This document shows, one piece after another, positions 6,501-40,610 of a stretch of 64,000 bases of DNA; the first letter of the stretch is position 1; every line of letters starts with the position of its first letter. The position numbers were made by a program, and so were the translations under genes. The stretch comes from Anthoceros angustus (Eukaryota; Plantae; Anthocerotophyta). The DNA lies in assembly GCA_010909165.1 (NCBI GenBank), contig MU008187.1:438247-502246 (forward strand), written 5' to 3'. The notes below the pieces were generated by a model that searched no databases, was not told where the DNA came from, and saw nothing but the letters and a program-made list of their open reading frames with translations.

Positions 6501-9500
6501 CAAGGGCTGGCCCAACTTTGTGAATGGTGTATCCCCAGGATGAGTCCCTACAGCAAGAAACTAAACACAGCAAAACATCAGCAGCAGACACTGAAAGCAA
6601 TAAACTTTAGCTCACAGCTCAGTTGCATTTATCGTAATCTAAAAACGAATCAACAATATGGAAAATGGTCCAGCTCTTTCAAACCTCTGCTCGGTGGTCT
6701 TGATCAATACAAGGCAGTAAAGGCCACCCTGGTCTCGTGGGGCACCAATCTAAAGCCCAGACAGACCCTCCTGCATTTAGCACGACATCGTTGCTGCAAT
6801 TACAGACGCCAATATTCAGTAGTAAGCAATAGAAGGAGAAGGTGACTCCACTCGTCCAATCCTGGAAATCACAGTGCTCTAACAACAAAAAGGACCCAAT
6901 GTTCCCTAAAGACTTGCTTGTTTGACAGAGAAAGGTATTCTAAGAGCTCACCATGTTTTCATTGTATTAGGTTCGACTGAATTGGGTTCACTGGCAGATG
7001 CTCCCAGCTGATGTGAAAAAGAGAACAGTGGTTAGTACAGGGGCTCTCTGACCCGTGAAACAAGTGTAAGAGTTAAGCAATTTCACAAACATCCAACGAA
7101 CATCACAAAAGTAACGCCCCTTCCACTCCAACGCCAGAAAACACAGAACGTACATCTGGGACGATGGCAGCTGTGAATAGGGGCAAAGTGAAGCCCATGT
7201 GTTTGTCATCAGCGTCAGACGTGTAGCGTAATTCTGGCGACTTCAGAGGAAATGAACAGTAGCTTTGCCAGTCTCTGGCATCATACGTTAGACACAAATG
7301 GGACAGAGTTACTGTAGTGATGATCATGACCAATTCATACGATCAGATAAAGTCGACATGAAAACTTGCAACAGGAACAGCTGCAACAAACGTGTCAAGA
7401 TTGTTTTCACTCATCGTGTAGAACATACGGTATAACAGTGATCTCAGAAAGCCACTTTGAACGAGTTTCATGGATGTCTTCTAGCGATCTCAACCCCTGT
7501 GGCCCTGCACGCTCCTGCTCCTCGCTTCCACCTTCACCAACATCACGTTCGCCAGTTTTAACTTCCTGCTCCTGATTAGCTTCCTTCTTCCCTCTCCCTC
7601 TGCCTCGGCCTCTACCTCTGCCTCTCCCTCGCCCCCTAGTCTTAACATACTCAGCTTCAATTTCCTCCCTGCCCTCCACAACATCGGCCCCGCTTTCACT
7701 GCCCTTGATTCCAGCATCCTCTTGCACAATAACTTCGCCATCCACTCCTTCGGCTATTATCTTATCTCTTCCACTACTACTGCCCCCCTCAGTACCCTCC
7801 ACAGCCACTCCCCCTTCCATCCCTACAGCCTCAGCTAGTGTTTCCGCCTCCATTCCTCTCCCTCGCCCTCTCCCCCTTCCTCTCCCTCTACCTCTGCCCC
7901 GACCTCGCCCTCTGCTTTTCTCAATGCTGTCCATCCCGATTTGCTCCTCAGTCCCTGCCTCCTCCCCCAAACTCACGCCCTCCACTTCAGCGTGCTCTTC
8001 CTCCACAGCCCCTGCCTCAGTTCCTGTTCCTCTCCTCTCCTCCCTCTGCCTCTGCCCCGACCTCGCCCTCTCCTTTTCTCAATGCCGCTCATTCCAGTTT
8101 GCTCCTCAGTCCCTGCCTCCTCCCCAAACTCACGCCCTCCATTTCACTGCGCCTCCACAGCCCCTGCCTCAGTTCCTGTTCCTCCTCCTCTGCCTCTCCC
8201 TCTCGGCCCCGACCTCGCCTCTGCTTTTCTCAATGCTGTCCATTCCCATTGGCTCCTCAGTCCCTGCCTCCTCCCCCAAACTCACGCCCTCCACTTCAGC
8301 GTGCTCTTCCTCCACAGCCCCTGCCTCAGTTCCTGTTCCTCTCCCTCTCCCTCTTCCTCTGCCTCTGCCCCGACCTCGCCCTCTCCTTTTCTCAATGCCG
8401 TTCATTCCAGTTTGCTCCTCAGTCCCTGCCTCCTCCCCCAAACTCACGCCCTCCATTTCACCGTGCGCCTCCTCCACAGCCCCTGCCTCAGTTCCTGTTC
8501 CCCTCCCTCTCCCTCTGCCTCTCCCTCTCCCTCGGCCCCGACCTCGCCCTCTGCTTTTCTCAATGCTGTCCATTCCCATTGGCTCCTCAGTCCCTGTCTC
8601 CTCCCCCAAACTCACGCCCTCCATTTCAACGTGCTTCTCCTCCACAAGCCCTGCCTCGGTTCCTGTTCCCCTTCCCCTCCCTCTACCTCTCCCTCTGCCT
8701 CTGCCTCTGCCCCGACCTCGCCCTCGCCCTCTGCTTTTCTCAACACCGTCCATTCCAGTTTGCTCCTCAGTCCCTGTCTCCTCCCCCAAACTCACGCCCT
8801 CCACGTCAACGTGCTCCTCCTCCACAGCCCCTGCCTCAGTTCCTGTTCCCCTCCCTCTCCCTCTCCCTCTGCCTCTCCCTCGGCCCCGACCTCGCCCTCT
8901 GCTCTTCTCAGTATCGTCCATTCCAAATTCCTCCTCAGTCCCTGTCTCCGCCCCAAAACTCACGCCCTCCATTTCAACGTGCTCCTCCTCCACATCCCCT
9001 GCCTCAGTTCCTGCTCCCCTTCCCCTCCCTCTACCCCTACCTCTACCTCTACCTCTGCCCCGTCCTCTTGCTTTCTCAATACCGTCCATACTCTCGCCTC
9101 CAAATTTCTCCTCAGCCCCTGTCTCTTGCCCCACTTCTGTGCCACTCACGCCCTCCACTCCAACGTCCTCCTCCTTCACAATCCCTGCTTCGGTTACTGC
9201 TCCTCTTCCTCTTCCTCTCCCCCTACCCCTCCCTCTCCCACGCCCCCTGCCTCTGCCGCTGCCTTTTGAGCTCTCTTCCTGAACTCCTTCTACTTCCATG
9301 GCTCCTGCGTCACCCCCTCCTGGCCCAGTAGTTCCAACATTCTGCCCATCGTCCTCTCCTCCTTCCTGTCTCTCCACCATGTCCACTCCACCCTCCTCAC
9401 CCCTTCCTTCAAGACCTAAACCTTCAGTCTCCATTCTGAAACTTCGCAAATCCACCTCCCCTCCTTCCTGCTCCTGCCTCTCCACCACCATGTGCTCTCC

Positions 9501-10116
9501 ACCCTCCTGCACATTCCCCTCAAAACCTAACCCTCCACCTTCTCCCCCTCCCTGCCCCTGCCACTGCCCCTCCACCACGTCCTCTCCACCCTCTCGAACC
9601 GTTTCCTCCACACTCACACCACCTTCAGCTCCTGCTTCATTCGTGACAGTCCCCCCTCTCCCAGCCCCTCTCCCTCTCCCTCTCCCCGGCCCAAATACCG
9701 CCAGCTTCACAGCCCCTCCATTCTCCTTTCCCTCCACACCACCTCGCCCTCTCCCTCTCCCTCTTCCCCTTCCCCTCCCTCTGCCCCTCCCTCCCTCCCT
9801 CTCCCTGCCCCCTCGTACTCGGTACCTCCTCCATCTCACCAGACGAGCTTCCCGAATCCGCGTCTGCCAATCGTGCTCGTTTCCTCCCTTCCTCCCCAGA
9901 GCCTGCTCCCTCCGCTATCCCCTGCCCTGCATCTTCTCCATTCCCGCCTCCCTGGCCTTCATCCCCTGCTCCTGAAGCACCATCTTCGTTTCCGTCAGCT
10001 ACGGGCCTCTTGACGCCTCTCCTGTTCAATTCAGCCGAGTCAGGGGTCCCAGCGAGGAACGGCACGTGATCCTTGTCAGCCGACGGTTCCCCGTCCCCAG
10101 CTTCCATTTCAAACAC
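3574..10116 (-). CDS. WD40-repeat protein, TFIIIC subunit (GTF3C2/Tfc6-like) homologue with N-terminal (RG)n/acidic repeats, multi-exon
   Basis: Exons contain LNAGGSVWALDWCP, GLVQIWAV, LVHDGLVTWDAKWRP, LGYLAVVLGDGSVQV, GHSGFVRFWD and the C-terminal WLAYGGTAGIVRCQ, the layout of the plant AT-hook/WD40 TFIIIC-type protein. The first exon (~10116-7410) has apparent frameshifts near 9800 and 8010-8220 inside low-complexity repeats, probably sequence errors. The start is uncertain. Confidence 0.78.
7585..9810 (-). repeat. Coding tandem array: about 12 (RG)n blocks, with about 8 near-identical 150-180 bp units (GRGRG...TGTEAGxVEEEHxExEGVSLGEExGTEExxGMDxIEKS)
   Basis: Seen directly in ORFs 8169-9839 and 7407-8006 and in the recurring plus-strand text ctgcttttctcaatgctgtccat...cccccaaactcacgccctcc. 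Confidence 0.95.
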
Positions 10117-10960
10117 TCCAGCTTCCTGCCTACGATCCTGCCCCCTGCCTGGTTTTCACGTGGGACAGAAAAGGATGGCAGCCTTTACTGGATCATCCAA
10201 TGCACGCCGCTGTGACGCCTTCTTGCCAAGTCAAGTACGCCGGTTGGGGAGCTGCAACATTGACAACAACCTGACAGTCCGATCCTTCGTCATCCTCATC
10301 GTCGTCGTCCACACTCGTTCCCGTGCCTTTCCTTCAAAAACTCACACCCTGCACACAAATCAAGTCGTGGAATTAGCGTTTGCCCTTTCATTACTGGTTT
10401 CTACCGAGGAACTTCCAGCCGTGTTTCATCTGCAATGTTCATGATAACACCCCCGCTAATCATAACCTAATCTAGATTGATTCCAGATTCGATGTAAACC
10501 GTATTATCTACTATTCTTTGAAAAAACTCTGTGCAATTTACATTTCTAGGTCAAGATTGTCAATGAGACCTACCTAGGTCCATATTTGTTCCACAAAGAT
10601 GGGATAAATCTATCGAGGAGAATTATCAAGGTCGCTCTAAAAACAAAAAGAGAAGATTTTATTCGAATATCCGAACCCCCTTCTCTGACATGTAAACCCT
10701 CTTAGCACACTCCATACAGTCCCAAAACAAGCATTTTAGCATGGTTTGAAAATAGGGCGACCCTTGTCCAAGAAGGGTTGACGTGAAAACCCGTTTCAAA
10801 CACAACGCAACAGTTAATCCAAGGAAAGGCGGCCGGCGCCTTTCCTTACTTTATGAACAAGAGAGAAAAATGATAACATCACTTGGCTAACTGCAATCGT
10901 TCCAAAAGTCTTTACAAACAAAGAGAAGAAGCACATCTATGTGCTTACCAAACCATTCAC

Positions 10961-12190
10961 CTACTCTATAGGGCTAACTTGGGACTCCTCAGGTGCTAGA
11001 GCCAACTCCGAATCCATCACGATGGCTAAATTTCGCATCCGCTCCACTTCCCGTTCATCGAAGCTATCGTTCTCCCCCAAGGCCCTTGAGTCTTCGTTGC
11101 GTCCTGCGTCGTCGTCGTCAGGAGTCGGTGAAGGCTGCCAAACATTATCAAGGGTTTGCTGACCCTCTGCCAAAAGGGCTCCAGTTTTGGTCTTCAGCCG
11201 TCGAGCATTCAAAGAAACCACCTGCGCTTGCAGAGAGTCCTTCTCGCTGATACACACCTCCTTGGCCCAGAATTGCGCAAGTCTTCTGCGGTGGGCCTCG
11301 AATGTCAATTCTTCGTCAGCATCTGGTAGCACCTCATACCCATTGATCCGCTGTGGAATATATCCTGCACACCTCAAGTCAGCCTCAATAGCAATACAAT
11401 TTCGTCCACACAATAGGGCCGCCAATAACGTTGTCCCACTCCCAGAGCAAGCGTCCAAAACCCAAACTCCCTCTTTGGAGAAGGTTTTGATAAGTTTCAT
11501 CATAAGCCCCAGAGGCCTCTGGTATGGGCATACCACCAGCTTGTCTTGTGACATGTACACCTGTTTCTTCACAACCGTCTCATGAGCGATTACAGACTCC
11601 CATTGTTGAAAGTACCGTGCATGGCATTTGGCAGCATTGGAACCCTATCCCCTGTGCACGCATCTTTCAGTCCCCAACCCACCGTGACATATTCCACGGT
11701 TTCAAACCCACCCCTGTCATTGTTCATGTTCGTCTTGTCCCATATAAATGAGACCAACCCCCCTTTCCTGCTCCACTTCCGCATCGACTCCCTCACAGTG
11801 TGAGCCTCCTCCACACCATGCATCACAATCATTCTCAACTCATCGCATGTTGTTTTCTCTGCAAAGCTCTGGAAAACAGTATCCATCATCTGCTTGTCCA
11901 TTCGTTTGTCCATAGGCCCGATTTGAAACCCCCTTGGAAGGTCAATCACAAGAAGTGTGTACTTGCGTCCTCTCAGAAATCCTCGCATGTCTAACACATC
12001 TCTGCTTTCTACTTGGTATTGTACTTGTTTTTCCGAGGATGGAACATTGAAGACCTCTAATCCTTCCTCAAGGTCCTTGTCCGCCAAAGCACGCTGCTCA
12101 TCCTCCAGTCCTTTCCAATTATTAACTTCAAAAATGAAATGTTGGAAGACATCTGGAAGTTTGGACAGGACCTCAATATCCTTCAGTTGC
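10961..12190 (-). pseudogene. Beta-class N6-adenine/N4-cytosine DNA methyltransferase domain (N6_N4_Mtase-like), one frameshift near 11620
   Basis: Motif IV-like YTLLVIDLPRG (11932-11943) precedes PYQRPLGLMMKLIKTFSKEGVWVLDACSGSGTTLLAALLCGRNCIAIEAD (motif I, 11429-11455), the beta-class order. The two halves are in different frames. Confidence 0.85.
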
Positions 12191-12299
12191 TGCCAAACAC
12201 AGGATTGTTAGGCTAAACCGCAAAAAAACAGAGACAAGGGCGCCGGCCGGCCGGCGCCCTCGAGGACCTTGCGACCACACATGTGCAGGAAACTCACCT

Positions 12300-12890
12300 T
12301 TCCAAAGCAAAAGCAGTTTGAAAGCGGGACAGCATCTGGTCTGTCGAATGCAACGGATATTCTTCCCGTACCTCCTCGAATGAAGAGCACCCCAGGTGTT
12401 TGACCATCGCAACTTGTATGACATGGAACTTCTTCCGCAACGTGATCTCCTCATCCATGCCCTTCAAATCAATCACCCAGCTTAAAACTTTTCTCGTAGT
12501 CACTGAATTTGCTGCCCACACTCTCCACCTGGTATCCCTTGGAAGGATTTCCATGGCTTTGCCAACATGTCCTTCGGCTTCACATACACAGTGTCCACTT
12601 GCTTCTGCTCGTCAGCCACCTTTTGCTTCCCTTTCCCTTTCTTGCTTATCCCCGCCGGTAAATGCTTCTTATGTTCCGGTAGTTCTCTAGCCTCCCACTT
12701 CGAAAAAATCGAGTCCACATTGTCCCAAACCTTTCCCTCCTGCTTGGCAATCGAGGGTAGACTACAGGGAAAGACTCCCTGGAGGTTCTCGCTGTTTGGT
12801 GTCAAACTCATAGCAACCGGCCCAAGGAAGAACTTGCTGGTGGAGGCCGACCCCAGGCAGTTGTGCCGTAAGGGCGAGTCGAAGCCAGTA
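12300..12890 (-). pseudogene. Middle exon of the ParB-MTase gene (helical linker region), one frameshift near 12530
   Basis: ORFs 12500-12811 and 12294-12554 join into VWDNVDSIFSKWEAREL...KPKDMLAKPWKSFQGI...VIQVAMVKHLGCSSFEEVREEYPLHSTDQMLSRFQTAFALE. A GTGAGT donor follows at ~12300 and an AG acceptor at ~12205 leads into the MTase frame. Confidence 0.55.
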
Positions 12891-14023
12891 AGCCCGAACT
12901 GAGGTTAGAATAGGAGGAAGAGGATGAGGAGATGAGTAGAGGAATAGAGTGTAGGCGTTAGCGGAAGGCCACAGGCAGAGCCTAAGGGACGAATCCCAAA
13001 TCTGCAAGTAAAAGAGCGCTCCCTGAGTGGAGAAGAGTGGTCTTAGAAGTAGGGACAAAATTGCGGTGTGGATCAGGGGGTCCCTGGGCGCCCGTGATAG
13101 GCTCCTCGCTGCTAAGGCAGGACCTGCAATTGTGTTGTGTCGTTGTAGGTCGGGGATTGGTAGTTTTTCGGAGCAGTGCAAGTGGCGCAGCTGCTGTAAG
13201 AGGGTGAGTAGAGGGCGCCTTGCTTGTTTAGAAGGCTGAGAAGGTGTGTCTCTGCAGGTAGCGATCGGTTATCACAAGGCCTCGAACTTTCACACAAGTC
13301 TCATGGGACGAAACCCAACGCAGGCGACAGTGGACAGTGTGGCCGCTAGAGTGGGAGGATCTCGGGAGCCCCGGGGTTTTCCCTACCACACTAAACCTCA
13401 CCCGAAGTTTATTACTTGGTTCTCGAGGGCGAAGTGATTCGGGCGGCCATTGGCTCCACTCCACCCGCTAGTTTGCAATCTAGTTTTCTCAACTAAGCCT
13501 CGAAGTGTTCGCCACAAGAAGCCGAGAACTTTTGCACAGCGGTGCAGCCGTGGAGCCGAGCATGCTTAACCCGAAGGCTGCCTTTTGCCCCATTTTGGCG
13601 TTTTTGTTATTATGAATTGCTAATTACAAGAAAATATGACCGCAATGTTCTCAACACCACAATTACCGTGATGACCTCCTCTTTCCAACCATATGTTCTA
13701 AAAAAAGCACCACCCCCTCAGTGAACATGCATAAATTTCCATAGCCATTTCGATCCACCCTGGGCACCAGCGTGAGGTGAGCATCTTTCTTTGCCTACCA
13801 TGAACTAAGGTGAACTGTAGATACGTATGTACACAAGAATGTAGGGGATTAGTTTGTGCGCATGACACTGGATCCTAAGAGCCCCGTTGCCAACCTTTCT
13901 TCGAGAAACAGAAGAGCCGAGCCGCACGGTAGAAGAGAGGGGTCTCTTAGTTTCCTTTTGTGCAGTTCCAAATGTGTACCAGTTTTGCCTACTAGAGATT
14001 TTAGAACGTAAAAGTGAACTCAA

Positions 14024-14130
14024 CGTTGTAAATAGTAATAGTTTCTAATTTTACAACGGAGTGTGTTGTAAATGGTAATAGTTTCCGACTTAACAACCGA
14101 GCGCGTTGCAAATAGTAGTTTCCAAAGTCG
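14024..14130. repeat. 40-bp tandem repeat, about 2.7 copies, units with inverted ends
   Basis: cgttgtaaatagtaatagtttctaattttacaacggagtg / tgttgtaaatggtaatagtttccgacttaacaaccgagcg / cgttgcaaatagtagtttcc. Confidence 0.85.
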
Positions 14131-14254
14131 TTTCACACAAACTCACCAGCCCCTGCAGGTGCACAAGGTAGGTGATGCAGGTGCACAAGGCAGGTGAGGC
14201 GGGTGCAATGCATGCAAGATCTTGTCTAATGCACAAAATGTATGTGCGATTGTC

Positions 14255-14950
14255 TACTTTGTTCTGCTTGTAGACATCGTCTTCGCGTCCTTCATGATCC
14301 TCAATCAATCCCAACACTTTGTACAGATTGTACTTCCATGCCATGGTCATCTGTACACCTTCGCGTTTTGCAATCAGCAGCTCATCTCTTAAGTACCGGA
14401 CCTGCTCAATGAAGTTCATCTTCTTCCTTTTGTCCGACATGGTATTGTGATCCGTGGCAAGCACTCGCATTTCTGGGACAGTAAGCCCACAATATACATG
14501 TGCTTCCACATATTGGAACCTCTTCTTCCCTGGTGAGATATCACATAGATGTTTCATAAGTGTGGTTGCCACCAAGAACCCCCATAACGTATTTTTTCGC
14601 CCGCCATCGCTTCCAGTCAAGCTTGAGGTCATCGCACTCACTTGGATCAATCATACATAAGAGTGGCAATACACCCTCCTCTATCCTCCCCTTCGAAATA
14701 ACTCGAGCCAAATAATTGGCCCATGCCTCATCAACCCTTCGAATCTGCGCATCCGGCGTAATGTGCGATGCTGGTCTTAAGTTCTCCAATTTGACCAACA
14801 CTATTTCTACGACAACCTTCTTCGCGTAAGCTGAATCCCTCAGGCGAGAGAGGGGGTCTGCATCCCTGATCGCGTCTTCAGACGTTCATCATCTGTCGAA
14901 ATATGCACAGTTGGAACGGCTCCAACCTGGTCCTCCTATACTGCCATTTT
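14255..14950 (-). pseudogene. ParB/Srx-like N-terminal domain (GGNH motif), frameshifted
   Basis: QIRRVDEAWANYLARVI...VMGVLGGNH (GGNH 14562-14573), then in a shifted frame MKHL...YVEAHVYCGLTVPEMRVLATDHN. This matches the ParB-fold GGNH/GxxR box and the downstream conserved Asn. An in-frame TAG lies near 14938. Confidence 0.7.
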
Positions 14951-14989
14951 CTTCGCTTTCTTTTCTTCCTCCCTGCCTCCGTGCTTCCA

Positions 14990-16864
14990 CTATGTGGTTT
15001 CTTTGTGCCCTCCATGGAATCCAAAGTCGCAGCACGCCTTTGAGCGCCCGCCGGTGGTCATCGCCTCTGCACTAAGGAGGGCGCCGGCCGGCTGGCGCCC
15101 TCCTCCTTCTTCCTCCTGCTCAACCCCTGTCTCGACCCCCATCGCCTCTTCCCCCTCGGGGGATCCAACAACAACACCTCTTCCACTGCGGTCCAGTGGA
15201 AGGGCTCTGGCAGCTGAAGCTCTTCCAGGCGGCCGGCCGGCGCCCCAAACCCCCATCTCCATGTTGAAACTGGATAAACCAGTTGGGATCCGGAGTGGGC
15301 AAGTCCGGACCGGCTCCACCCTTCATCACACCAGGGGCGCCGGCTGGCTGGCGCCCAAGACCCTGTTCTAGACTGTAGGCAATGGTTGGGACAACCATTG
15401 ACGCACCATGCATTGCCAAGCTGGGCAGCATATTTGCATCCCTATGTTCGTCCTGTCCCCCAGAAACTTCTTCATCCGAATGGCCGAGCACGTCTGGAAT
15501 GGGGCCATCTTCCTCATCTGATGGGCCAAGTTCACTCTCTGGGATCCGGGGCTCCGACCGCCTCTTCTTTGATGGGCTGCTCTCACCCTTCTCATTGATA
15601 GCTCCCCTCCGTGATCCACAACTCTCGTAATCTTCCAAATAGCCTCGATGAGGGCCATTCCGACCAACGGTGGCTGGAAAACAGAAGAAGCGAAAGTCAC
15701 GTCAGTCATCAAAGTCTCATGGTTTTGAAAAAGACAGTCATTTGAGACAGCTTACAGTATGTTGGCGCATGCACTCGCGAAACTCTTCGACTAGTGAGCG
15801 AGGTGCACATTTCTTGGCATGGAACCCTCGGAGGCTGAGAACATAAGACCTGTATAGATTAGGGTCCTGGATCACTGCGTTGAACTCATATGGCCTGGTG
15901 GTGCAAAATAACGTAAACTCGGGCTCCCCCTCATTCATATCCATTGTTGCCCAAATTACCCAACCAGCCCTTGCTCTTTGATTGGGCAAAGCCCCCCCTA
16001 TATCCCATTATCCAGAGTTTCAGCAAGGGCGTCCATGCTGCTGTTTCATCTTCTGGATGCGGATCCTGGACGAGCATCCAATCCTTCTGCAAAATGAGAA
16101 CAGGGTCAATCTGGCCACCCAGTCTACGGATGTGCATAGTTTCCTCGTAGCTGAAAGGTGACGGAATTGGGGGTGGCACCGGATGCTTTGAACTTTTTGG
16201 TGCTTCATTCCCCACCCCTTGCCCGCCACCAGCCTTTGTTTGGCTAGTCTTCCCTGAAGACATGCTCCCTGATTTTGCCTCCCTAGCCGAGGCTTTATGC
16301 CCTCCCACACCTCCTGGATGTGCAGAGTGCGCTCCCAGATTGCCTTGCACTCGCCCTGGTGGCGCCCGAACTTCTTCTCCGGTTCGCAGCCGCCGCCTTG
16401 TTTCCACCGATTTCTTACGCCGCTATGGCTGAGATCGGCCCGCCTTTGCCAGTCCTTCTTGCTCCGCCTCCCGCCGCCATCTTTCTTTCCTTCAAAAGAG
16501 TGTATTGCCTTGCACTCGCGAACTAGCAAGAGAAATGCAAGGAAGGGGACACTCTGTTCACATGAAGAGGGCCGAACCTCTCTCGCAAAAACTGCCGATT
16601 GATGCGCGTGTTCGATGGCTTCCGACTGCCTCTCAAAACCTCGGCGACTGTCGCAGATTGCTCAATTCTCTCTCGCGCGTGGCCGCGAAGGGAGGATGCC
16701 TGGAATTCCACTGCAATTGTCTCCAAATCGATGAGCAACACACGCTGTATGCACTCGCCCTCTTTACTTCTCCTGGACTGGAAATACGCCCCACAACGCC
16801 ACACCGTCACGCGAACTAGCAAGAGAAAGAGGGTTGTAATTAGGGTTTCCTCGCCCCCGGGCAT
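14990..16864 (-). pseudogene. Fragmented low-complexity/acidic reading frames upstream of the ParB domain; possible N-terminal exons or a second cargo gene
   Basis: Overlapping minus-strand ORFs (14990-15319, 15120-15638, 15738-15989, 15931-16407, 16020-16529, 16523-16864) include an NLS-like SPSKKRR and acidic tracts. No family recognised. Confidence 0.35.
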
Positions 16865-17364
16865 TTATAGCCCAAAAACTTGCCTGAATTACCTTATGAC
16901 ACCATATTTCGATATGCCCTAATATAAACTCCTCTCTATCTACCGTTGGATATCTGTCACTGATAGTCCATCATGATCTCGTAACTACACAGAAAAATAA
17001 TGTCCTTTATATCTTTGCGATAGGCCTACTAAGGCACACAGCCGCCATTCGCATGCATCTTCCTTGTCCATTCTCCTCGTTACTAAAGTTGTCTTGCGGG
17101 ACGCCTGTAGGCCTGTCTGCCTCTTCCATGTCCACGGCGGGGGTGTTCACATTCGAGGTTCTTCTGAACGACGTGGGCATACAATGTTACGCCTCACCCA
17201 CACTCCGGAAGGAGAAGAGGTTTGAGTTCTTTCCTTCAGCAAGGCTGACTTCCTTTCCCTCGTCGGTCTTGTTTTCGGATTCTAAGTTAAGTTATTTTTC
17301 GATTCTGGATTCATCGGCTTTCAGGATAATCTCTGGGCACAACACAAGCCTTCCCAATGTCTGA

Positions 17365-20300
17365 GTGCTTCACATAAAAAGAGAAGGGAAGAGGCTAGCT
17401 GTACAGGCCGCCACATCACCGTCATCTGCCGCAACCCGTCGTGTGCATTTTGCCATTGCAGAAGAACGTAGGGATGATGAAGGTTCGATTTGTTCCCTTC
17501 AGATTGGTAGTGATGATGCTCGTTGTGAAAATCCATATGGTGTGATCCCTGTTGAATATTCTGATATTGCTGTTGCAGACAGTAGACGAAGACGTCGACA
17601 TTTGGCATCGCCAAATGTCCCGCGGGGTGTTCCTCCAACACCTAGGAATTTGCATCGTTATGCTGCTTTGGAGGGAAGCCCATCCAAACGCCGTTCTCAG
17701 TCTCTTCCCAATGTCAGTGACGTTCCCCCGGGAGATAGACCGCTGGTTCCACGCCGTGGCTTGTTTCATGAGGATAATGTAGCTCGCCTGCACTCACCGG
17801 ATGATGAAGGGCCCATTGGGGACGACGAGGATTCGGTCCACTTCAAGACACCTGCTGCATGTCGTTCCTTCCATCCGAAGCCTCTGAGTGAGACTTTGAA
17901 GGCCCCGACAACCGCAAATACTTTCACGCCGAGACGCGAACTGGAGTGTCGTTGAGAAAAGTGAAGGGAGACAATGCTTGATTTCAAGAAGCCTTGTTGC
18001 AACAACATGTGTCTGCTGAAGCTGACCAAAGAGCGATTTCAGGAGCAGCGATACCGCTTTCTTCGGATGGGGAGGCAGGAACAGGAGACATTTCTTCAGT
18101 CCCTTGTTCAGTCGGATGGAGTGCATGGTGATAGAAGGAAAGCGGTCACACATGTCATGGGAGCGACTCCTATGCGCTGCTGCTTGAAGGCCTTCAAAAG
18201 AGTGTATTGCCTTGGGCACATGAGGTATGAGGAGCTAAAGAGCAGAGTCATTCTGGAATCACCTTGGGATGGATTCGGACCAAACCCGAAGGCACAATCT
18301 ACTTATGCGCTTGATGCCATTTCTTGGATGGACAATGCTTTTACGTTTATGGCCGAGCGGCTTCCAAATTTGGAAGTTTTCAATCTACCCGACACGTATA
18401 CGAAGTTGGAAATATGGACCTTGTACAAGCGTCAGTGCGAAAGCTCTAGCATACGCTATGTGAAGTATCCATGGTTCTTAAAACCGTGGAGAAGCAACTT
18501 CCCAAGAGTGAAAATCCCGAAGTCCAACAAATTTTCAACATGCTCGCTTTGTGCAGGTCTGAAGAGCACTATAAGGAATACAAAGCACAAGCAAGATCAA
18601 GGTAAATTGAACCAATGTGTCCTCCATTGGCTTGTTCCTCTGGTGAATTCCCTGGCTATCATCATGCACCGGATGTTCCCCTCTTGTGTCTCCTTCTGTC
18701 ATAATGGTTGCATGTACTGGCATGTTGCAATACTTACCATGGATTGGGTTTCCCACAAAGGCCACGCTAGAGCGCCGGCCGCCTCTTCTAGAGGCTGCCC
18801 CTCTCGGAAAGCGGGAGGCGCCGGCGCTGCTGAACTCTGATGATGATTGGAGCCTCCCAAATCATCCGGTGAAGAAGGGGAAGGCGCCGGCCCCCTCCCA
18901 CTATCTGTTGCATGATGATTTTTTCGAAAAAAGCTTTTATAGGTTAGATGCTTCTCTGTCTGGCCGAGATTGGGCGGTCTATTTTATTGCTGATTATGAC
19001 GTTTGTATGTGGCACAGAGAAATTTTAGGTTGCTTTGGAAGCACATCGTGTGCGGCTCCACCGAGGCAGAAAATGGCTAAACACGGGGCAAGAGCTATGT
19101 GGAGCCACATAAGTATATCTTGCTCTCAATTGATGGAATGGACCAAAAAAGAGATACCTCATCTTCTCCGGTGGCGAAAAACCTCGTAGAGAGGTAGATA
19201 TTCATCCACGTGGTTGGGTGCATGCTTCACAACTACACAAAGCTAGAGCCTATTTGCATTATGCGAATTTGCGGAACGACGCGAATCTTACGATCAGCAT
19301 CATTCAGGACGTTATACATAATTACGAGGGTGTCCTGCCAAGAGTTTTGTATTTGCAGTTGGACAACACATGCAGGGAGAACAAGAACCAGCTGCTTTTT
19401 GCATATCTGAACATGCTTGTTGATATGGGTACTTTTGAAAAAGTGAAAGTGGGATTCCTTTTGGTCGGGCATACTCATGATCAAATCGACCAGATGTTTT
19501 CTTGCTTCTCCAAAAGCTTGAAACATAAAAAGCTCACACCCTTCCGCATTGTCGAGATCTTGATGCAAGCGTACACTCCAACACGGTCAAGTATTGGTAA
19601 GTGGCGACTTAGGTCATATGTGTGGCCCATTACACAAGGCCAGAGAGGACTCAGTTATGGGGCGGCAGTAAAGAAACTGAACAACCTATCGTTCCAGCAC
19701 CAGTTTAAAATAACACGTGAAGAGAAAGCGGACCGTGGGTTTGTGACAGTTATCAGGAGCAAGCAGTACTCGACCTCGCCTCAGTGGGAAACAGAAGGGG
19801 GTTTGGAGTTTTTGAAATTTGTGCCTTCGGACACTATAACAGTTGCGCCCTTGACTGCACTGCGGTCGAGGGATAAAAAGGAAGCCCGGTACTATTATCT
19901 CCAAGCTGCGGCCGTTGCTCATCTAAAGGACGGTCTTTGAACTTAGGCCTTATGTGACATCAAGGAGTTTTATGGTGGGAAGCTTTACGGGTGGACCAAG
20001 AGGAAATTGCTGTTATTGTGGAAAACAACATTGGCCTTGTGCTACACAAACCTTGGAGGTGGTACTCGGATCGAAGTGGAAGGCAACCTCTGCATGTTCG
20101 GATGAAGCACTCTTTGGAGGAGGCATTCTTGAGGAGCTCCCACAACGAGATATGTATTTGGGAGCATACCAAAACCGAGGGAGGCAACAACAAGAAATGT
20201 CACGGTTGAATGGTGATATCGCGAAATAAAGGAATGTTAGTTGCGTTCCAGCGGACAGAACGCAAAATAGACCCTTTTGGATTGGGAAGGTGACTTGTGT

Positions 20301-22207
20301 TAAACTACATGCACCACCTCACTTCCTTGTTCATTAGTACAGGCGAACACACGATGCGTATGAAGGAGTGCGTGGAAGAATATTTAATCGGAGGGATGGC
20401 AAGGAGCCTAGGAGTAACGGGGAGAGGCGAAGGCTATCCATCAAAGAATATCCAACAAGTTTTTGTTCACCAAGCGGTCATCCTCTATTATGGGTTCAGC
20501 TTGACTACGCGGAAACATTTGTATGTGGCATGAGAAATTTTAGGTTGCTTTGGAAGCACATCGTGCGGCTCCACCAGAACGGAAAATGGCTAAACGAGCA
20601 AGAGCTATGTGGAGCCACATAAGTATATGCTCATCAATTGATGGAATGGACCAAAAAGACAGAGATTCCTCATCTTCTCCGGTGGCGAAAAACCTCGAGA
20701 GGAGTGTCGATTTCACCACGTGGTTGGGTGCATGATTCACAACTACGCAAAGCTAGAGCCTATTTGCATTATGCCAATTTGAACGACGTGAATCTTACGA
20801 TCACCATTATTCGGGCGTTATACATAATTACGAGGGTGTCCTGCCAAGAGTTTTGTATTTGCGGTTGGACAACACATGCAGGAGAATAAGAACCACCGCT
20901 TTTGCATATCTGAACATGCTTGTTGATATGGGTACTTTTGAAAAAGTGAAAGTGGGATTCCTTTTGGTCGGGCATACTCATGATCAAATCGACCAGATGT
21001 TTTCTTGCTTCTCCAAAAGCTTGAGACATAAAGAAGCTCACACCCTTCCCGCATTGTCAGAGATCTTGATGCAAGCGTACACTCCAACACCAGAGGTAAA
21101 GATATTGACTGAAGTGGCAGACTTCCGGTCATATGTGTGGCCTATTACACAAGGCCAGAGAGGACTCACTTATGGGGCGGCAGTAAAGAGATTGAACAAC
21201 TTATCGTTCCAGCACCAGTTTAAAATAACACGTGAAGAGAAAGCGGACCGTGGGTTTGTGACAGTTATAAGGAGCAAGCAATACCGCCTGGGGAAACCAA
21301 GGGGTTTGAGTTTTGAAATTTGTGCCTTGGACACTATAATATACCGATCTGACCGCCCAAGGGATAAAAAGGAAGCCAGTACTATTATCACCAACAGCTG
21401 CTCATCTAAAGGACGGTCTTCGAACTTAGGCCTTATGTGACATCAAGTGAGTTTTATGGTGGGAAGCTCGGGACCAAGAGGAAATTGTCATATTGTGGAA
21501 AACAACATTGGCCTTGTGCTACACAAACCTTGGAGGTGGTACTCGGATCGAAGTGGAAGGCACCCCAACCTCTGCATGTTCCTGATGAAGCACTACTGGA
21601 GGAGGCATTGCCGAGGAGCTCCCACAACGAGATATGTATTTGGGAGCATACCAAAACCGAGGGAGGCAACAACAAGAAATGTCACTATTGAATGGTGATA
21701 TCGCAAAATAAATGTGGATGTTAGTTGCGCTCCACGTACACGCAAAATAGACCCTTTTGGATTGGGAAGGTGACTGGTGTTAAACTACATGCACCACTGC
21801 CTCACTTCCTTGTTCATTGGTACAGAACTAACACAGATGCGTATGAAGGGAGGTACGTGGAAGAATATTTAATCAGAGGGGATGGCAAGGAGCCTAGGAG
21901 TAACCCGGGGAGAAGGGGGGCGAAGGCTATCCATCGAAAGAATATCCAACAAGTTTTTGTTCACCAAACGGTCATCCTCTATTATGGGTTCAGCTTGACT
22001 ACGCGGAAACATTTGTACGCTGTGGATAAGAAGGCAATCAAGGATAAGTTAATTGAATTGCGAGGCTTTATTCAACCAGCGAGTCAAAGTGCAACCGAGG
22101 ACAGTGAAGATGATGGTCATGATGCCGGGCCCAACGAAGATGATGGCGTGAGCCCAAGAGTAGGAAACACTCTGAATGTTGGGTCATCTTCGACGGGCAA
22201 TTGGTGA
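17365..22207 (+). pseudogene. DDD/E transposase (DUF7869/Sola-like) with Cys-rich N-terminal region, a probable intron (~18602-19017) and a C-terminal Tudor/BAH-like segment; frameshifted and partly duplicated
   Basis: KPCCNNMC and WRSNFPRVKIPKSNKFSTCSLC are followed by RNase H-fold catalytic-type motifs SIDGMDQK (19132 and 20640), LYLQLDNTCRENKN (~19350) and FLLVGHTHDQIDQMFS (~19460 and ~20960). Confidence 0.85.
19002..22016. repeat. Direct tandem duplication of ~1.5 kb of the transposase (19002-20517 and 20518-~22016)
   Basis: The two units are collinear and highly similar with different small indels. The junction lies in the microhomology TTTGTA(T/C)G. Confidence 0.93.
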
Positions 22208-22531: not shown

Positions 22532-23341
22532 TTGCAGTCTGGGGGACTGAAGCATGTGAACAATTTGCGGGCACAATTGAGACTGTGCGGAAGCCATCCC
22601 CCCACCCCAATCCTAAAGTCTATTTGTAAACAAATCCCACTAAAGGCCTGCTACTCTCCGCTATTCGCAAGGCATCATCATGAGAGAGGGACGCCGCCGC
22701 CGCCCCTCCTCTCGACACCTTTGGTACCGCCGGCGTAGTCATTGTCATCCAAATCTGATCACCGTTCTTTTTTGGAGTTTTTAGTGTTGTTGAACGAGAA
22801 AGCCAGGCAGTTACCGGCAGCAATGGCCCTTGTCATGGGTCTTAAATATGCCCCAAATGAGGTTAACTCTTATACCGTAACCCTTCGTGGGCATGAAATG
22901 GATCTTAAATCATTGGTTCATACCAATTGTCACCCTTCTTTTCTGCCTTAAATTGACCCATACCCCAAAAACCACGAGTTCAATACCCATGTGAAACCCC
23001 CTTCAGAAGATATATGTCACAAAACCCTCTTCGTGAATATTCACCCCCTTCGAAAGATATCATGTTTAGTAAAGAATGATCAGCAGGCGCTGGAAACTCT
23101 ACATGCGGATAAAACTGATTGGCAAGTCGAACAGCCTTTAGCAGCAAGAAAATTGGGTAGTCTGCAGGAGTCTGCCATAATTGACAAGTCGGACAAGCTT
23201 CTCCAACTGCAATTGGAAATCCTACACAAAAATGCAATTGGCAAAACGGAACTCAAACAACCTTCAGCTTCAACAATTAGAGACAGTAGGAGATCCTGCA
23301 CAAAAACGTGGCAGAGTAGCCTTGCTGCTACAATCCACTGA
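22532..23341 (+). pseudogene. Decayed reading frame of unknown function (about 270 codons, two internal stops)
   Basis: ORFs 22532-22738, 22742-22951 and 22991-23341 are all in the same frame and separated only by single stops. Confidence 0.4.
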
Positions 23342-24251
23342 GATTCGGCCTCATGTCCCTCCGATTTGTCCCCACCCCCTCAACTTCGCTCCCTTCGCAA
23401 CAACGTTAGAAAGAGGCGCGTCAAGTGCAGAAAAGAGGGTCGAGGATCGATTGAACTGATGGTCAAACAGTTCGAATTGAGATTTTGAGGATAGTTTTTT
23501 CTAGAGAAAAACCTGAATTTTAAATAATGAGAGTTACAAAATGTGTTGAGCATGGAAAAAATTAACAAGCAATTCAATAGACTGCCCAGGCACACACAAC
23601 AACAAAAAAATTAGAGGAGGCCAAGTGTGCAAGGGTCATGATGTAAAGAAGAACTAGGAAAACCATGCTTTCTGCAGATAAAAGAACAAAACAAACGGGA
23701 GTCGCCAAAGACCTTAGGACACTACTAGACTAGCGGTTCATGCCAACTACATCATATTTTAGTTCGTCCAATTGCTGATCCACTCGGGTCCACAAACCAT
23801 TTTGTGGTTTTGTTCAATTTTGCTCAGTACATCTACGATCTGCAACTTTGGAGAGTCAATTCGGCCGATTCGGTTTAGTTTTGAGGCATGTTAGCATTGA
23901 ATTAGCACGAATTGGTATCCGAACGCAATCCCACGTGGCGCTCAATTCACTTTCGTAAGCAGGTATTTATTGCATGTCAGTTTAGTTTCAACTTGTTCTG
24001 ATGTCGAACTGGAATAAGAATAAAAAGCCATAGTTTGACGAAGTTTGAGATTTGTATTTTATATTCTATTATTAAAGTTAATGGTGTCATGGCTCAAGAG
24101 GTCATCTACATGCAGATAGAATTGATTGGCAAGTCGAATATAGTGTAGCAACAAGTCGAATATAGTTTAGCAGCAAGAAAGTTGGGTAGTCTGCAGGAGT
24201 TTGCCATAATTGATAAGTCGGACAAGCTTCTCTAATTGCAATTGGAGATCC
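23116..24251. repeat. Dispersed ~110-bp direct repeat (23116-23222 and 24123-24251)
   Basis: tgattggcaagtcgaa...tttagcagcaagaaa(a/g)ttgggtagtctgcaggagt(c/t)tgccataattga(c/t)aagtcggacaagcttct...gcaattgga(a/g)atcct occurs twice. Confidence 0.9.
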
Positions 24252-24477
24252 TTTCCTCATGCGACATCTTTTTGTTAGTCATTTGCCCTAGATAACTTGG
24301 CCACCTGCACACCCATCTACGTCCTGGCAAAGTGGAATTGGTTTGATTAGGACATACAAGTCTTTGACCCACAGCAGTATCCATGGATTAAGCAAGGCTT
24401 GTGCTGAAGAAAGCAAATAGGAGTGCACTTCATTGAATAAGTAGAGATGGTGTAAGGCCGTCTAAGTCTGACGCAGG

Positions 24478-35739: not shown

Positions 35740-36334
35740 TATCGATGTGTATATCAGTGCATTGGATCACTTTGCATGTTGCTGCGAAGGCAACTTGTAC
35801 ACTGAACATGTTGGCAAGCTTCCCAGTGTTCACTCAAAATCCTCTCCAAAACCCTTTTCAACGATGAGAAGGGAAGGGAAAATGTAAAATAAGTGTCTAA
35901 ACATTTTAGCAGTTTCCCGTGACGCACGCTGTATGAACGTTGGTTGCAAGCGCAGAGGTTCGAAACGTATTCGCACGTCTCCAAGTTTTGGGGTGAAGGC
36001 TTTTCTATCAGAGTGTAATTAAGAAATCAAGGTTAGGTATAAGATTATATTTTTTATATTTTGATTGAAAAATGTAAATAATGTACTTATATTTATTTTA
36101 ATTAAAAATTATGCTATATGTGATTTGCTTCATTAGATTTAATATTAGATTAGGAACCTACTATAATAGTAATGAATAGGTAGTCATATTTATACTTGTG
36201 TTTATTGATGGGTACTTAGGTGTACTTATAAGCTTTAGCTTTTGATAGTATAGATATCCATGAGTCTTTTGAGAGTAAGAAAGAGTTAAGTGAGGATCTA
36301 ACAAAATCTTATAAAAAGAAGAATGAAATTGGAT

Positions 36335-36424
36335 ATTGATAATGAACTTTGAAATTGATAATGAACTTTGACATTGATAATGAATTTTGAGATTGATAAT
36401 GAACTTTGAGATTGATAATGAACA
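36335..36424. repeat. 19-bp tandem repeat x5 (ATTGATAATGAACTTTGAN) just 3' of the lipocalin gene
   Basis: Units start at 36335, 36354, 36373, 36392 and 36411. Confidence 0.92.
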
Positions 36425-36473
36425 TTTTACAGCAAGATCAAACTTTGAGATTACATTGATTGAATAGTTTCAA

Positions 36474-38063
36474 TCATACAAGAGCACCACAAGAAGTATC
36501 GTGAGGATGAAAAATAAATAGATTATTGCATTCCAAATCAAAATCATTATCCTCTGCAATGTTAAAATACTTTTCTAAAGTATTTGGTGATACTGTAAGA
36601 TTTCTTGAAAAAATGAACATTGATTGACTTACATCTCCATTATTATCTTGAACACATGAATAAACAAGGGCAGAATCATAACCATTTTCAGGTAGTCCTT
36701 CCAAAGCCAATACCCAATAAGGCGAAGTGGCAGGACATTGACTTGAATCATCATTTTCCAAAGTTATTGTAAGTTTTCCCAAGGTTGAATTACTTTGAAA
36801 ACCAGACCCTTGGGTGGAGCAAACAGTTGACGTATTGCATTGATCAATCAAAAGGAAGTTGGCAGTCATTTCTATGGCATCCAAACTCATCCTTATACTC
36901 TCAGTCTTTGCAAGAATGAAACTTATTTGATCCGCAATTTCCATAGTAAGATAGTTGAGTTGAATTGCGGAGTCAGTTGGAGGTTCTAAAGGCTCCAAAA
37001 ATACCGAGTCATCAGCAACAAAAAGCCTTGTAGCTATCTAAAAGAAGAAATATAAATAATTAAAGCTTATAGTTTACTACATGCATTCTAACATGACATA
37101 TAACCTGAAGATACCCAGTAAGTAACATGCAACAAAAAAACTTTATTACCGAGACTATCTCTACACGTTGAAGCTCAATTTGTGAGAGATGTTGAGTAAT
37201 ATTTGAAATTTGGTCACATTCAACATCTAAAAGTGACTTTAGCTTGGTTACTTCATCAGTTCTTGGTGCTCCGTTACTAAGATTAACTATTAGATTTTGA
37301 ATTAAACTCATATTTCCAGCCAGCAGGTCCAAAACATTTTCTATCTTGTCAGCTTCAATTTGGATCCGAGCTGAAGCAATTTCAAGTCCTTTTGCTTCAG
37401 TGGCAAATGGAAAAGCAACACGTGCAATAATGGCTCCAATCTGAATTTTCATGTTTTATTTTTAATTAACTCAGTAGAAAAAAAAAACTGTACACATGCT
37501 ATAATACTGGAAAGAAAAAATTAACGAGTCTCATTCTTCATGATATCATTCAGAAAGGAAAAAAATAATAATGAGAAAAAAATCTTATCAACCTGAGCCA
37601 CTGTTTGTGATATTCGTCCTGTAGCACCAAGTAACCTACAAATTTGTTTAGCTGCACCACAAGCATCATTAGTGGATCTACCGAGTGATCGTATCGCAAT
37701 AGTAGGCACCAAATCCATCACCCGTAGTCCACTATTCACTAATCCAAACGATGTGTTCGAATTTGCATCCAATTTGTAATTAGCTAGTTGACAAATAAGA
37801 CCAGGTTCATTTTCTAAGCTGTCTCGCCCGGTGCTTCCAATTTTATACCATTGTCCCATATAAGATGACAAATCAATGAAGTCATATGTTTTCGGTGAGG
37901 GACACGTCTTATTTCTTAGAACTCTGGGACAAAATCTGGGCGGTGAGTTCCCATAAGAGATGACTTCAGAATAACAACACAAATAACACAAGTGTAAAAT
38001 GAATAAAATACAGAACAATTCTCCCAAATGCCCGCATGTTCCTATATTTTGTGACATTGTCAT
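36474..38063 (-). CDS. Secreted-type lipocalin (ApoD/Blc-like) interrupted by a ~200-aa helical insert; 3 exons, 441 aa
   Basis: Exons 38063-37593, 37440-37150 and 37037-36474 with two phase-0 GT-AG introns give an open frame. N-half: FIDLSSYMGQWYKIG...CQLANYKL (GxW motif). C-half: GKLTITL...PYWVLAL...YDSALVYSC...MFIFSR. Confidence 0.8.
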
Positions 38064-38076
38064 TGTTTAGCATTGA

Positions 38077-39596: not shown

Positions 39597-40610
39597 ACTG
39601 AAATAGCTGAATCCTCTATTGAAATAGCTCATTAGCTATAAAATCTTCTTCCTTTATTTCTTTTAAATTATTTCTCAAATGTGAAAGAATCTCATGGTAT
39701 CATATATTATACGATTCTTGTGAGATTTGTGAAATAATATCATTATTTGTGATTGTTGAATGTCATGCACTTATGAAGCAAATACAAAGATCAAGTGAAC
39801 GCAGATCCGGGCTCAAATAGCAGCCATGATTTTGCACAATTTAACAACACACACAAACTCATTTTGGAAGAAGGCGGAGTTGTGTGTTTGGTTTGGTAGA
39901 ATAGTAGCTTTCTCAGTTAACCTCCTCCCCAATAAATCATTCATGATCAGTATCATGAGCAACAATCTAATGGATACACTACTATTTTAAATTTCAGTAT
40001 GTTGATTGTTTTCTGTCATGTCAGATTAGATTATACAAACCTAGTCCTTACATGGGATCTTAGAGTCTAGCATGCTGGAGCTCTGGTCTCTCCTTTTTCT
40101 TGTTTGTTCATGGTTATTGGATTACTCATGTGCAAGACTTTGTACCTAGTGTGGGAAAATTAAATTAGCTATCTATATAATTTATAATTATATTAGATAG
40201 TTATATATATATAATGGTAATAAAAAATTGAAATATTTGAACTAGTTGAATAAGCGGACAGAAAAGTCGAGTAGGAGAGGTAAAGAAGAGAGCAGGTGTG
40301 CGAGAGTTTGGCGGGGGTCCAAAGTGGCGCCAACTTCCAAAACAAGTTGGGCAACAACCCCGGTCCGCTTTCTTGTCAGGAGACAGGAGAGTTGGGGAAA
40401 GGAGCCAAGGCCCGAACTCGAGCGTGGCATATCTTCCGGGGCGTGGGTTAGACCACCAACTGTCGGCCCGCGGGCCCCTTCGAATTTCGAACAAGGGGAG
40501 AGGGCAGGGCAAGCGCCACGCCCGCACGGAGCCACGGACCCCTTTTCCTCGCACCCGGACCTCTTTCGCCCGTGAAGTTCACACACACGCAGCGAGTCCG
40601 AGACAAAATG

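Follow-up and report, generated by a model that had tools for sequence, protein, structure and literature searches.

A degenerate copy of a probable composite DNA transposon with a ParB-like/methyltransferase gene in Anthoceros angustus

Introduction

Can a plant DNA transposon carry its own DNA methyltransferase of bacterial type? This question is raised by a 64,000-nucleotide stretch of the Anthoceros angustus genome (GenBank assembly GCA_010909165.1, contig MU008187.1, positions 438,247 to 502,246 of the forward strand), hereafter called the window. Here, a gene for a DUF7869 transposase on the + strand lies next to a − strand gene for a ParB-like protein fused to a methyltransferase (MTase) of the N6_N4 type. 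An initial annotation, made from the sequence alone, had proposed that the two belong to one cut-and-paste element equipped with a writer of N6-methyladenine or N4-methylcytosine (6mA/4mC). Our analysis indicates that the region is, with good probability, a dead copy of a lineage of composite DNA transposons in streptophytes, in which a DUF7869 transposase is combined with a ParB-like/MTase protein.

Results

The presence of both genes was confirmed by Pfam and by collinearity with relatives. DUF7869 was recognised twice on the + strand (19194-19730, E 6.5e-41, and 20829-21239, E 1.5e-33), and N6_N4_Mtase once on the − strand (10964-11644, E 1.5e-11). A hidden Markov model (HMM) of the transposase family, derived from 104 DUF7869 proteins, matches the window gene over model positions 61-717, and that of the MTase family matches its gene over model positions 27-318. 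The − strand gene is collinear with the full-length ParB-like/MTase proteins of Chara and Ginkgo. As the genes have their 5' ends towards each other, the arrangement is head-to-head (divergent) and not "back to back" as first described. Pfam recognised no host gene in the interval from about 10.2 to 25.4 kb of the window, which agrees with the earlier view of an insert free of host genes; the long exons of a GH28 gene recognised by Pfam begin at 25469. All coordinates are collected in Table 1.

The same divergent layout was found in three further loci. The first is an 8.9 kb metagenome contig (L001), whose proteins have their nearest counterparts in Chara. It encodes the transposase in two open reading frames (ORFs) on one strand and, as the divergent partner, P0012, an intact ParB-like/MTase of 789 amino acids. 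The ends of this contig are inverted repeats that enclose both genes (28 nt at 96% identity, extending to at least 44 nt at about 89%), and no other recognisable gene lies between them. The other two loci are in Riccia sorocarpa. In L005, an N-terminal fragment of the transposase is placed head-to-head with the MTase gene, and a second, transposase-only element adjoins; no clear terminal inverted repeats were found in L005. In L057, on another chromosome, a truncated transposase is head-to-head with a ParB-like plus MTase gene. Together with the window, the layout occurs in four loci from at least three lineages, with identical orientation and order in all four. The proposal of one mobile unit with both genes is therefore supported by L001, where the pair lies inside the inverted repeats, and by the two Riccia loci.

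Both genes are multi-copy in relatives, which we counted toward mobility of the element. At least five MTase paralogues were detected in Chara braunii, at least five in Ginkgo biloba and two in Riccia sorocarpa. The Ginkgo proteins (P0002, P0111, P0154, P0155 and P0156) are 55-95% identical in their aligned parts and differ in their internal deletions, which gives the impression of decaying copies from a fairly young family. In Chara braunii, an in-frame stop codon is bypassed by an annotated 'intron' in gene model GBG66685.1 (P0013; L002, 10736-10738), and this copy, too, looks decayed. The closest relatives of the window MTase are contigs of run SRR33208241.

The two genes of each element are also tied together by a shared palindrome. 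In the window, GGCGCCGGCC occurs six times against 0.05 expected, always within 10831-18892, and a 20-mer palindrome gives three matches against 0 expected. The shared GC palindrome noticed earlier is hence real and confined to the element region. Each element has its own palindrome of 20-26 nt in about 6 to 23 copies, and even the two adjacent Riccia elements have different ones. The palindromes occupy fixed places, which are the transposase intron, the shared promoter or intergenic region, the intron of the MTase gene and a site immediately 3' of that gene. Within each of the elements of the window, L001, L005 and L057, one element-specific palindrome is found in non-coding parts of both genes; arrays at the same position of the transposase intron occur in the window, L001, L005 element 2 and L057. 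The palindrome of L057 was not found elsewhere in the 21.8 kb of that locus. Because the sequence turns over and the placement is conserved, the comparison suggests that the palindromes are cis sites co-evolving with a protein of the element.

Several details of these sites should be mentioned. A hairpin just inside the right terminal repeat of L001 is placed like the leftmost palindrome of the window, which possibly lies near the left end of the element. When the two outermost palindrome sites of L005 were aligned, the palindrome itself was the sole shared part. The motifs GCGATAT and AAACCGG are common to the terminal and internal repeats of L001; each is about fivefold enriched, and 2-3 of 200 shuffles reach the same count, so that this sharing is suggestive only. 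The core of the window palindrome contains neither A nor T, and therefore adenine methylation could not act within it. The 1473 nt MTase intron additionally harbours two tandem 40 nt units (14025-14104), each a hairpin (GTTGTAAA...TTTACAAC).

Table 1. Features of the element copy in the window and palindromes of related loci (window positions unless another locus is named; a slash in a splice site marks the exon-intron boundary)
Feature	Position	Strand	Basis or remark
Homologue-collinear stretches of the − strand gene	14759-14553, 14500-14402, 12751-12551, 12491-12309, 12183-11593, 11602-11267	−	alignment to full-length relatives
MTase C-terminal half: PYQRP, motif I, non-conserved tail, stop codon	10961-11602	−	family HMM 134 bits; 46-50% identity to P0001, P0002
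Frameshift within the MTase domain, ...GTFNNG vs SVIAHETVVKK	11593-11602 (~11598)	−	two surplus bases, no room for an intron
MTase N-terminal half with motif IV VIDLPRGF (11926-11943)	11603-12189	−	family HMM 88.5 bits; no Pfam match
GT-AG intron, 108 nt	12190-12297	−	donor phase 2 / acceptor phase 0, a defect of 1 nt
Helical linker exon(s), conserved SSFEEVREEYPLHS block	12298-12761	−	frameshift between 12491 and 12533
GT-AG intron, 1473 nt	12762-14234	−	phase-consistent (TT/GTGCAT ... CTGTAG/T); absent from relative L003
ParB/Srx-like N-domain, probable (...LLCMIDPSE...VLGGNH / ...YVEAHVYCGLTVPEMRVLATDHN)	14235-14885, upstream limit uncertain	−	family N-domain HMM E 2.5e-9, 1.2e-3; collinear with P0013, P0012
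Leftmost GC palindrome (AGGAAAGGCGGCCGGCGCCTTTCCT)	10822-10851		~110 nt 3' of the MTase stop codon
Perfect 20 nt palindrome in MTase intron	12237-12261		
Three GC palindromes upstream of the ParB-like exon	15078-15102, 15223-15247, 15334-15358		
GC palindromes in transposase intron	18772-18789, 18872-18896		
Window-type palindrome, candidate cognate site			GGCGCCGGCCGGCCGGCGCC
Transposase exon 1, N-terminal Cys-rich CC..C / F..C..C domain	17974-18601	+	family HMM 61-268, 106 bits; matches the 385 aa ORF of L001
Transposase GT-AG intron, 427 nt	18602-19028	+	joins exon 1 in phase to copy A
Tandem copy A of the catalytic part (LQLDN, GHTHDQID)	18999-20536	+	DUF7869 19194-19730; IDGMDQ out of frame, more frameshifts
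Tandem copy B	20515-22032	+	DUF7869 20829-21239; frameshifts at other places than in copy A
Transposase C-terminal domain, then stop codon	21725-22207	+	family HMM 629-717; resembles Riccia and Chara transposase C-termini
Riccia L057 palindrome GCAACTCATGCG-N-CGCATGAGTTGC, 14 copies	L057: 5538-5667 (transposase intron), 7256/7319, 8601-8744, 10468-10609 (between ParB-like and MTase), 11956/11980 (3' of MTase)		
Riccia L005 element 1 palindrome, CCATGA-N3-TCATGG type, 23 copies	L005: 5480-13530		
Riccia L005 element 2 (neighbour) palindrome, CATGCG-N-CGCATG	L005: 14332-16551		
L001 inverted repeats of CGTATATCGCTATCGGT-type motif	L001: 2262-5941		gaps equivalent to those of the other elements

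The transposase gene of the window consists of a Cys-rich first exon, which ends in a canonical donor (CAAG/GTAAAT), and a catalytic part that is present twice. The two copies of this 1.5 kb tandem duplication are 88.5% identical (blastn) and differ by many indels of 1-2 nt. The junction is a short TTTGTA(T/C)G microhomology, and since the duplication begins about 30 nt before the intron acceptor, copy B has an acceptor site of its own. A frameshift directly after the catalytic motif IDGMDQ is common to copies A and B and is therefore older than the duplication. Programmed frameshifting at the A-run following IDGMDQ was considered and rejected, because a shift of +1 would be needed and the A-run does not form an in-frame slippery heptamer.

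To characterise the fold, the transposase of L001 (P0162) was modelled with AlphaFold2 (AF2) from an alignment of 104 sequences, giving a mean predicted local distance difference test (pLDDT) score of 84.6. The catalytic motifs of the L001 type (IIDGMDQ / LQLDN / GHTHEDID) supply a D..D..E triad. Of the invariant acidic residues in the model, D44 lies where strand 1 ends, D127 follows strand 4, and E166/D169 lie where the next helix begins; their spacings of about 83 and 39 residues correspond to a DDE arrangement. The top Foldseek matches of the model are almost all nucleases with an RNase-H-like fold, mainly transposases and integrases; they include IstA, retroviral integrase cores (PFV core, probability 0.96), Mu, TnsB, NurA, PIWI and terminase nucleases. 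DUF7869 is thus predicted, from this relative, to adopt an RNase-H-like fold with a DDE triad. The C-terminal domain of the L001 protein is beta-rich in the same model (strands 407-482).

DUF7869 itself gave 392 matches, all annotated as uncharacterised. Their distribution is patchy, with at least ten paralogues in Chara and further members in Cymbomonas, oysters, mussels, corals, urchins and amphioxus. No match to a named superfamily was found in Pfam at E<=10 (no rve, KDZ, Plavaka, hAT, MULE or PIF).

The MTase gene contains the AdoMet-binding motif I, VLDACSGSGTT (11429-11461), which is conserved throughout the family. Motif IV precedes motif I, as in the beta-class N6/N4 amino-methyltransferases (PF01555). 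When the family profile was compared with the Protein Data Bank (PDB), DpnA was the best match (7e-14), followed by MboIIA, CcrM and RsrI, which are adenine-specific beta-class enzymes; the rotifer N4C enzyme N4CMT (8s9m) matched more weakly. In the wider family, motif IV reads D[FILV]P[YH]G and aligns to the DPPYG of solved enzymes. The window gene has DLPRGF, which contains no aromatic residue and does not match the catalytic consensus (D/N/S)PP(Y/F/W). The same Y-to-R change is found in its three nearest relatives, P0001, P0006 and P0011, which together with the window form a DLPRG subclade. Because the arginine is kept among sequences that are only 30-50% identical, sequence comparison marks it as a trait of this subclade and not as random decay.

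Variants of motif IV reading N-(I/L)-P-Y are active in the Erm/KsgA adenine methyltransferases, and by this analogy the family members with DxPYG could well be active.

Database searches returned only distant relatives of the window MTase. An exhaustive search of representative sequences with its C-terminal exon gave a top match of 51% identity and no close relative; since no representative match exceeded this value, the protein is not annotated in the protein collections searched. A word-indexed homologue search with the family alignment found essentially only the Ginkgo paralogues and a few weak matches, and the window protein was absent.

Upstream of the MTase domain, and separated from it by a helical linker, lies a domain that is probably ParB/Srx-like. 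Three observations favour this assignment. First, among the metagenome matches listed, all of them bacterial MTases, several of those that best match the family MTase domain are fusions of ParB_N and N6_N4. Second, a profile comparison (hhalign) of the eukaryotic N-domain with bacterial ParB_N gave a P of 0.0037; GG[CG]H was aligned with GHTR, and the following strand-helix unit v.C.VY.GLT..EA...HN with vPc..ddLt..Q..a.RL.DN. Third, in a profile search of the PDB, sulfiredoxin took the top four places, aligned on GGCH, at a weak E of about 0.5. The ParB-type domain of the initial annotation is accordingly rated as probable, but its characteristic arginine is absent: the sequence is GGNH in the window and GGGH[SY] or GGCHS in relatives, with no arginine directly after it in the place where ParB has GxxR. 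The putative chromatin reader was not found. Pfam gave neither a ParB nor a reader domain in any − strand exon, no conserved reader was seen upstream of the ParB-like domain, and the ORFs at 15123-16422 have neither a Pfam match nor a relative in the other loci.

Both genes of the window have decayed. The MTase gene carries three frameshifts (~14561, 12491-12533 and ~11598), none of which leaves space for an intron, and one splice-phase defect. At ~14561, GGNH continues as LMKH... in the next frame over the same bases, leaving no room for an intron. At ~11598, the homologue alignments meet at 11593/11602 in different frames; an intron of 47 nt at 11597-11643 was rejected because homology runs through it in the other frame. 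The earlier reading of spliceosomal introns in both genes was correct for the in-phase GT-AG introns at 12762-14234 and 18602-19028. A third intron, at 12190-12297, has GT-AG borders but is out of phase, and the three frameshifted sites had been taken for exon junctions.

In view of the frameshifts in the MTase and transposase genes, both are pseudogenes. The DHDPS gene of the host in the same window is a single intact ORF of 397 codons in which 284 of 289 Pfam positions are matched. Since host genes of this window (DHDPS, GH28) are intact, assembly error is an unlikely cause of the lesions. Since neither gene is intact and one contains an internal duplication of 1.5 kb, the copy in the window is a degenerate and immobile relic in which nothing is functional, and the earlier suggestion that this copy could mark itself does not apply to it.

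The remainder of the window contains some further features. Between the transposase stop codon and the GH28 gene, two direct repeats (23098-23223 and 24105-24252) of about 125-150 nt are 82-90% identical and lie about 1.03 kb apart; they might mark another small element or a decayed right flank. On the other side, the region 7700-9980 is GC-rich (0.61) and strongly C-skewed, with long overlapping ORFs in several frames and (RG)n / (PL)n repeats in units of about 200 nt; these probably belong to the left-hand host gene as its low-complexity part. An AT-rich island at 36000-40300 (GC about 0.33; flanks 0.45-0.65) contains a lipocalin-like gene on the − strand with a GxWY motif (Pfam Lipocalin, E 1.6e-6), the first exon of which is duplicated at 97% identity (37521-38060 and 39039-39572). 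A MeaB-type GTPase, the chaperone of B12-dependent methylmalonyl-CoA mutase, and the intronless DHDPS gene are located at 43680-44360 and 44798-45988; the best named streptophyte matches of this DHDPS share only 51-61% identity with it.

Discussion

We interpret the region as a probable dead copy of a composite transposon. An intact element, as in L001, would be about 9 kb long, with terminal inverted repeats and two divergently transcribed genes. The first would encode a two-part transposase, in which an N-terminal Cys-rich domain is separated by an intron from the RNase-H-like catalytic core of DUF7869; the second an accessory protein composed of a ParB/Srx-like N-domain, a helical linker and a beta-class amino-methyltransferase akin to the bacterial and phage fusions. 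The transposase would cut and paste the element. The palindromes may serve as cis sites bound in a parS-like manner, either by the Cys-rich domain of the transposase or by the ParB-like/helical module, and the MTase may mark element DNA, for example telling replicated from unreplicated copies or interfering with host silencing.

Symmetric sites could in this way let the element sense replication. The model is drawn by analogy with IS10/Tn10 and Tn5, which are regulated by Dam, and with Ac, which involves binding to hemimethylated ends; methylation of symmetric sites in the element could couple transposase expression or the use of the ends to replication. In the bacterial examples the methylase belongs to the host, whereas here the element would bring its own.

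Several points weigh against this interpretation. A search with blastn and 9-mer seeds around the copy in the window revealed neither terminal inverted repeats nor a target-site duplication (longest match <=10 nt), and hence the boundaries of this copy are undefined. The shared termini anticipated earlier were seen in L001 but not in the window, and the L001 repeat reaches the end of the contig, so that a target-site duplication is not visible there. In both Riccia copies that bear the MTase, the transposase ends early (L005 5572-6373 and L057 5209-6474, with the HMM reaching 263 and 339, respectively); internal deletions that spared the MTase may account for these copies. At four Chara loci, two with the MTase and two with the transposase, no partner gene was found within 10 kb; at these loci, N gaps occur no more than a few hundred bases away from the genes, and a fifth Chara locus is mostly N. 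As to the proteins, the Foldseek E-values are all 1.8e-3 or worse. Homology of the N-domain to ParB is weak: Pfam ParB (PF02195) has no match at E<=10 in the − strand exons of the window and none at E<=0.01 in full-length relatives, and AF2 reached a pLDDT of only 41 for this domain from a 6-sequence alignment. For the DLPRG subclade a "6mA/4mC writer" is unproven, and we do not accept this label because motif IV has lost its aromatic residue. Transposition and methylation activity of family members are predicted only.

The first alternative, which we consider improbable, is that two separate mobile units are involved: the MTase with its palindromes would be a cargo or non-autonomous module that has repeatedly landed beside DUF7869 transposases or been mobilised in trans by them. 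The identical order and orientation in all four linked loci argue against this, as do the occurrence of one palindrome in both the transposase intron and the MTase intron of a single element and the finding that both genes of L001 are intact between a single pair of terminal repeats. The idea draws on the Riccia loci, where both MTase copies adjoin transposases without a catalytic core and one of them is neighboured by the transposase-only element with its different palindrome. Most DUF7869 proteins, in animals and other algae, also show no sign of an MTase partner, and TET/JBP genes of fungi are known to move between transposon superfamilies (PMC12730594).

If, on the other hand, the ParB-like/MTase were an ordinary or decaying host gene next to an unrelated DUF7869 insertion, the lack of termini enclosing both genes in the window and the separate Chara loci would be easily explained. 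This is very improbable given the head-to-head adjacency at four loci in three or more lineages, the L001 inverted repeats around both genes and the element-specific palindrome common to them; the MTase is, moreover, multi-copy, with truncated paralogues in Ginkgo and Chara and a pseudogene in the window. Most improbable of all is a fragment of a larger integrated virus-like or plasmid-like element, with DUF7869 as integrase and a ParB-MTase that serves DNA packaging or partition, comparable to the ParB-terminase loci of phages. Phages and plasmids are the typical carriers of ParB_N-MTase fusions (PMC4738411) and the Foldseek matches include integrases and terminase nucleases, yet L001 has only about 8.9 kb between its terminal repeats and no other recognisable gene, capsid, polymerase or packaging genes are absent from the window and the Riccia flanks, and both genes have spliceosomal introns.

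The composite transposon that we favour is related in kind to several known systems. Its accessory protein resembles the bacterial and phage fusions (PF02195 + PF01555) in having a ParB-like N-domain followed by a beta-class MTase with motif IV before motif I. Identity is limited to 23-45% over short stretches of the MTase domain, and tblastn against plasmids matched this domain only, and weakly. The eukaryotic N-domain differs in being unrecognised by Pfam and in having GG[GCN]H in place of the arginine-bearing GxxR. The eukaryotic protein also has an extra helical linker of about 200 amino acids and a motif IV of DxPYG or DLPRG instead of DPPY, and its genes contain spliceosomal introns and reside in a eukaryotic transposon.

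Fungal DNA transposons (KDZ, Plavaka and others) carry TET/JBP dioxygenases and show lineage-specific expansion (PMC12730594). They share with the present element the plan of a cut-and-paste DDE transposon with a base-modifying enzyme as accessory gene. Here, however, the enzyme is an amino-methyltransferase, DUF7869 has no Pfam match to KDZ or Plavaka, the hosts are streptophytes, and palindrome arrays and a ParB-like domain are present. Retrotransposons with DNA methyltransferases (SymbioLINE/DIRS-Dnmt, Klebsormidium; DIRS1 Dam-like; PMC5890265, PMC4738411) are likewise eukaryotic mobile elements that encode their own MTase. Theirs are C5-MTases or an inactive Dam-like domain in a polyprotein, in contrast to the separate, divergent beta-class gene of a DNA transposon described here.

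A prokaryote-type N6_N4 MTase fold is also present in two domesticated eukaryotic enzymes, Marchantia DN4MT1 and bdelloid N4CMT; neither is reported in the sources cited here with a ParB-like domain or a linked transposase. DN4MT1 has the motif TSPPY (bioRxiv 10.1101/2021.02.12.428880) and falls into a different clade. Identity with it was rejected, and the earlier thought that such elements were the source of this domesticated enzyme is unlikely, as the two are not close. Ginger/GingerRoot (PMC6839031) is similar in its occurrence in non-seed plants and in corals, sea anemones and other animals, in its short D-E spacing and in its integrase-like fold. The GingerRoot transposase matches Ginger2 at E 5e-16, whereas DUF7869 has neither an rve nor any other Pfam match at E<=10; without rve-type similarity, identity with GingerRoot was not upheld. 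GingerRoot has terminal repeats of 100-150 bp and a 6 bp target-site duplication, and no MTase is reported for it (PMC6839031).

Transposons with DNA-modifying enzymes are therefore a kind already known. In agreement with the initial annotation, the literature searched, whose coverage was incomplete, yielded neither a report of a DNA transposon that carries a ParB-like/amino-MTase gene nor any mention of DUF7869.

A more far-reaching idea, and to us a doubtful one, is that streptophytes contain a transposon lineage with a complete self-recognition module of bacterial ancestry: a ParB-like domain for DNA binding or nucleotide switching, fused to an amino-MTase, and arrays of co-evolving parS-like palindromes in the introns, promoter and ends of the element. 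Such an element would mark or clamp its own DNA independently of the 5-methylcytosine (5mC) machinery of the host. Members with DxPYG, such as L001, would then be active writers and the DLPRG subclade non-catalytic or re-targeted. If true, the module could time transposition to replication or allow escape from silencing.

Transposons that bring their own DNA-modifying enzyme are rare, the known cases being the fungal TET/JBP transposons and the DNMT-bearing retrotransposons, and they show how mobile elements fight or exploit the epigenetic control of their hosts. The tie between an amino-MTase/ParB-like protein and DUF7869, seen in Riccia, in a charophyte-like metagenome contig and in Anthoceros angustus, gives a functional context to a widespread and uncharacterised protein family. 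It also points to a possible route by which bacterial amino-methyltransferases came into, and spread through, the genomes of the green lineage. The element-specific palindromes and the intact protein pair of L001 provide concrete material for studying 6mA/4mC writing on eukaryotic transposon DNA.

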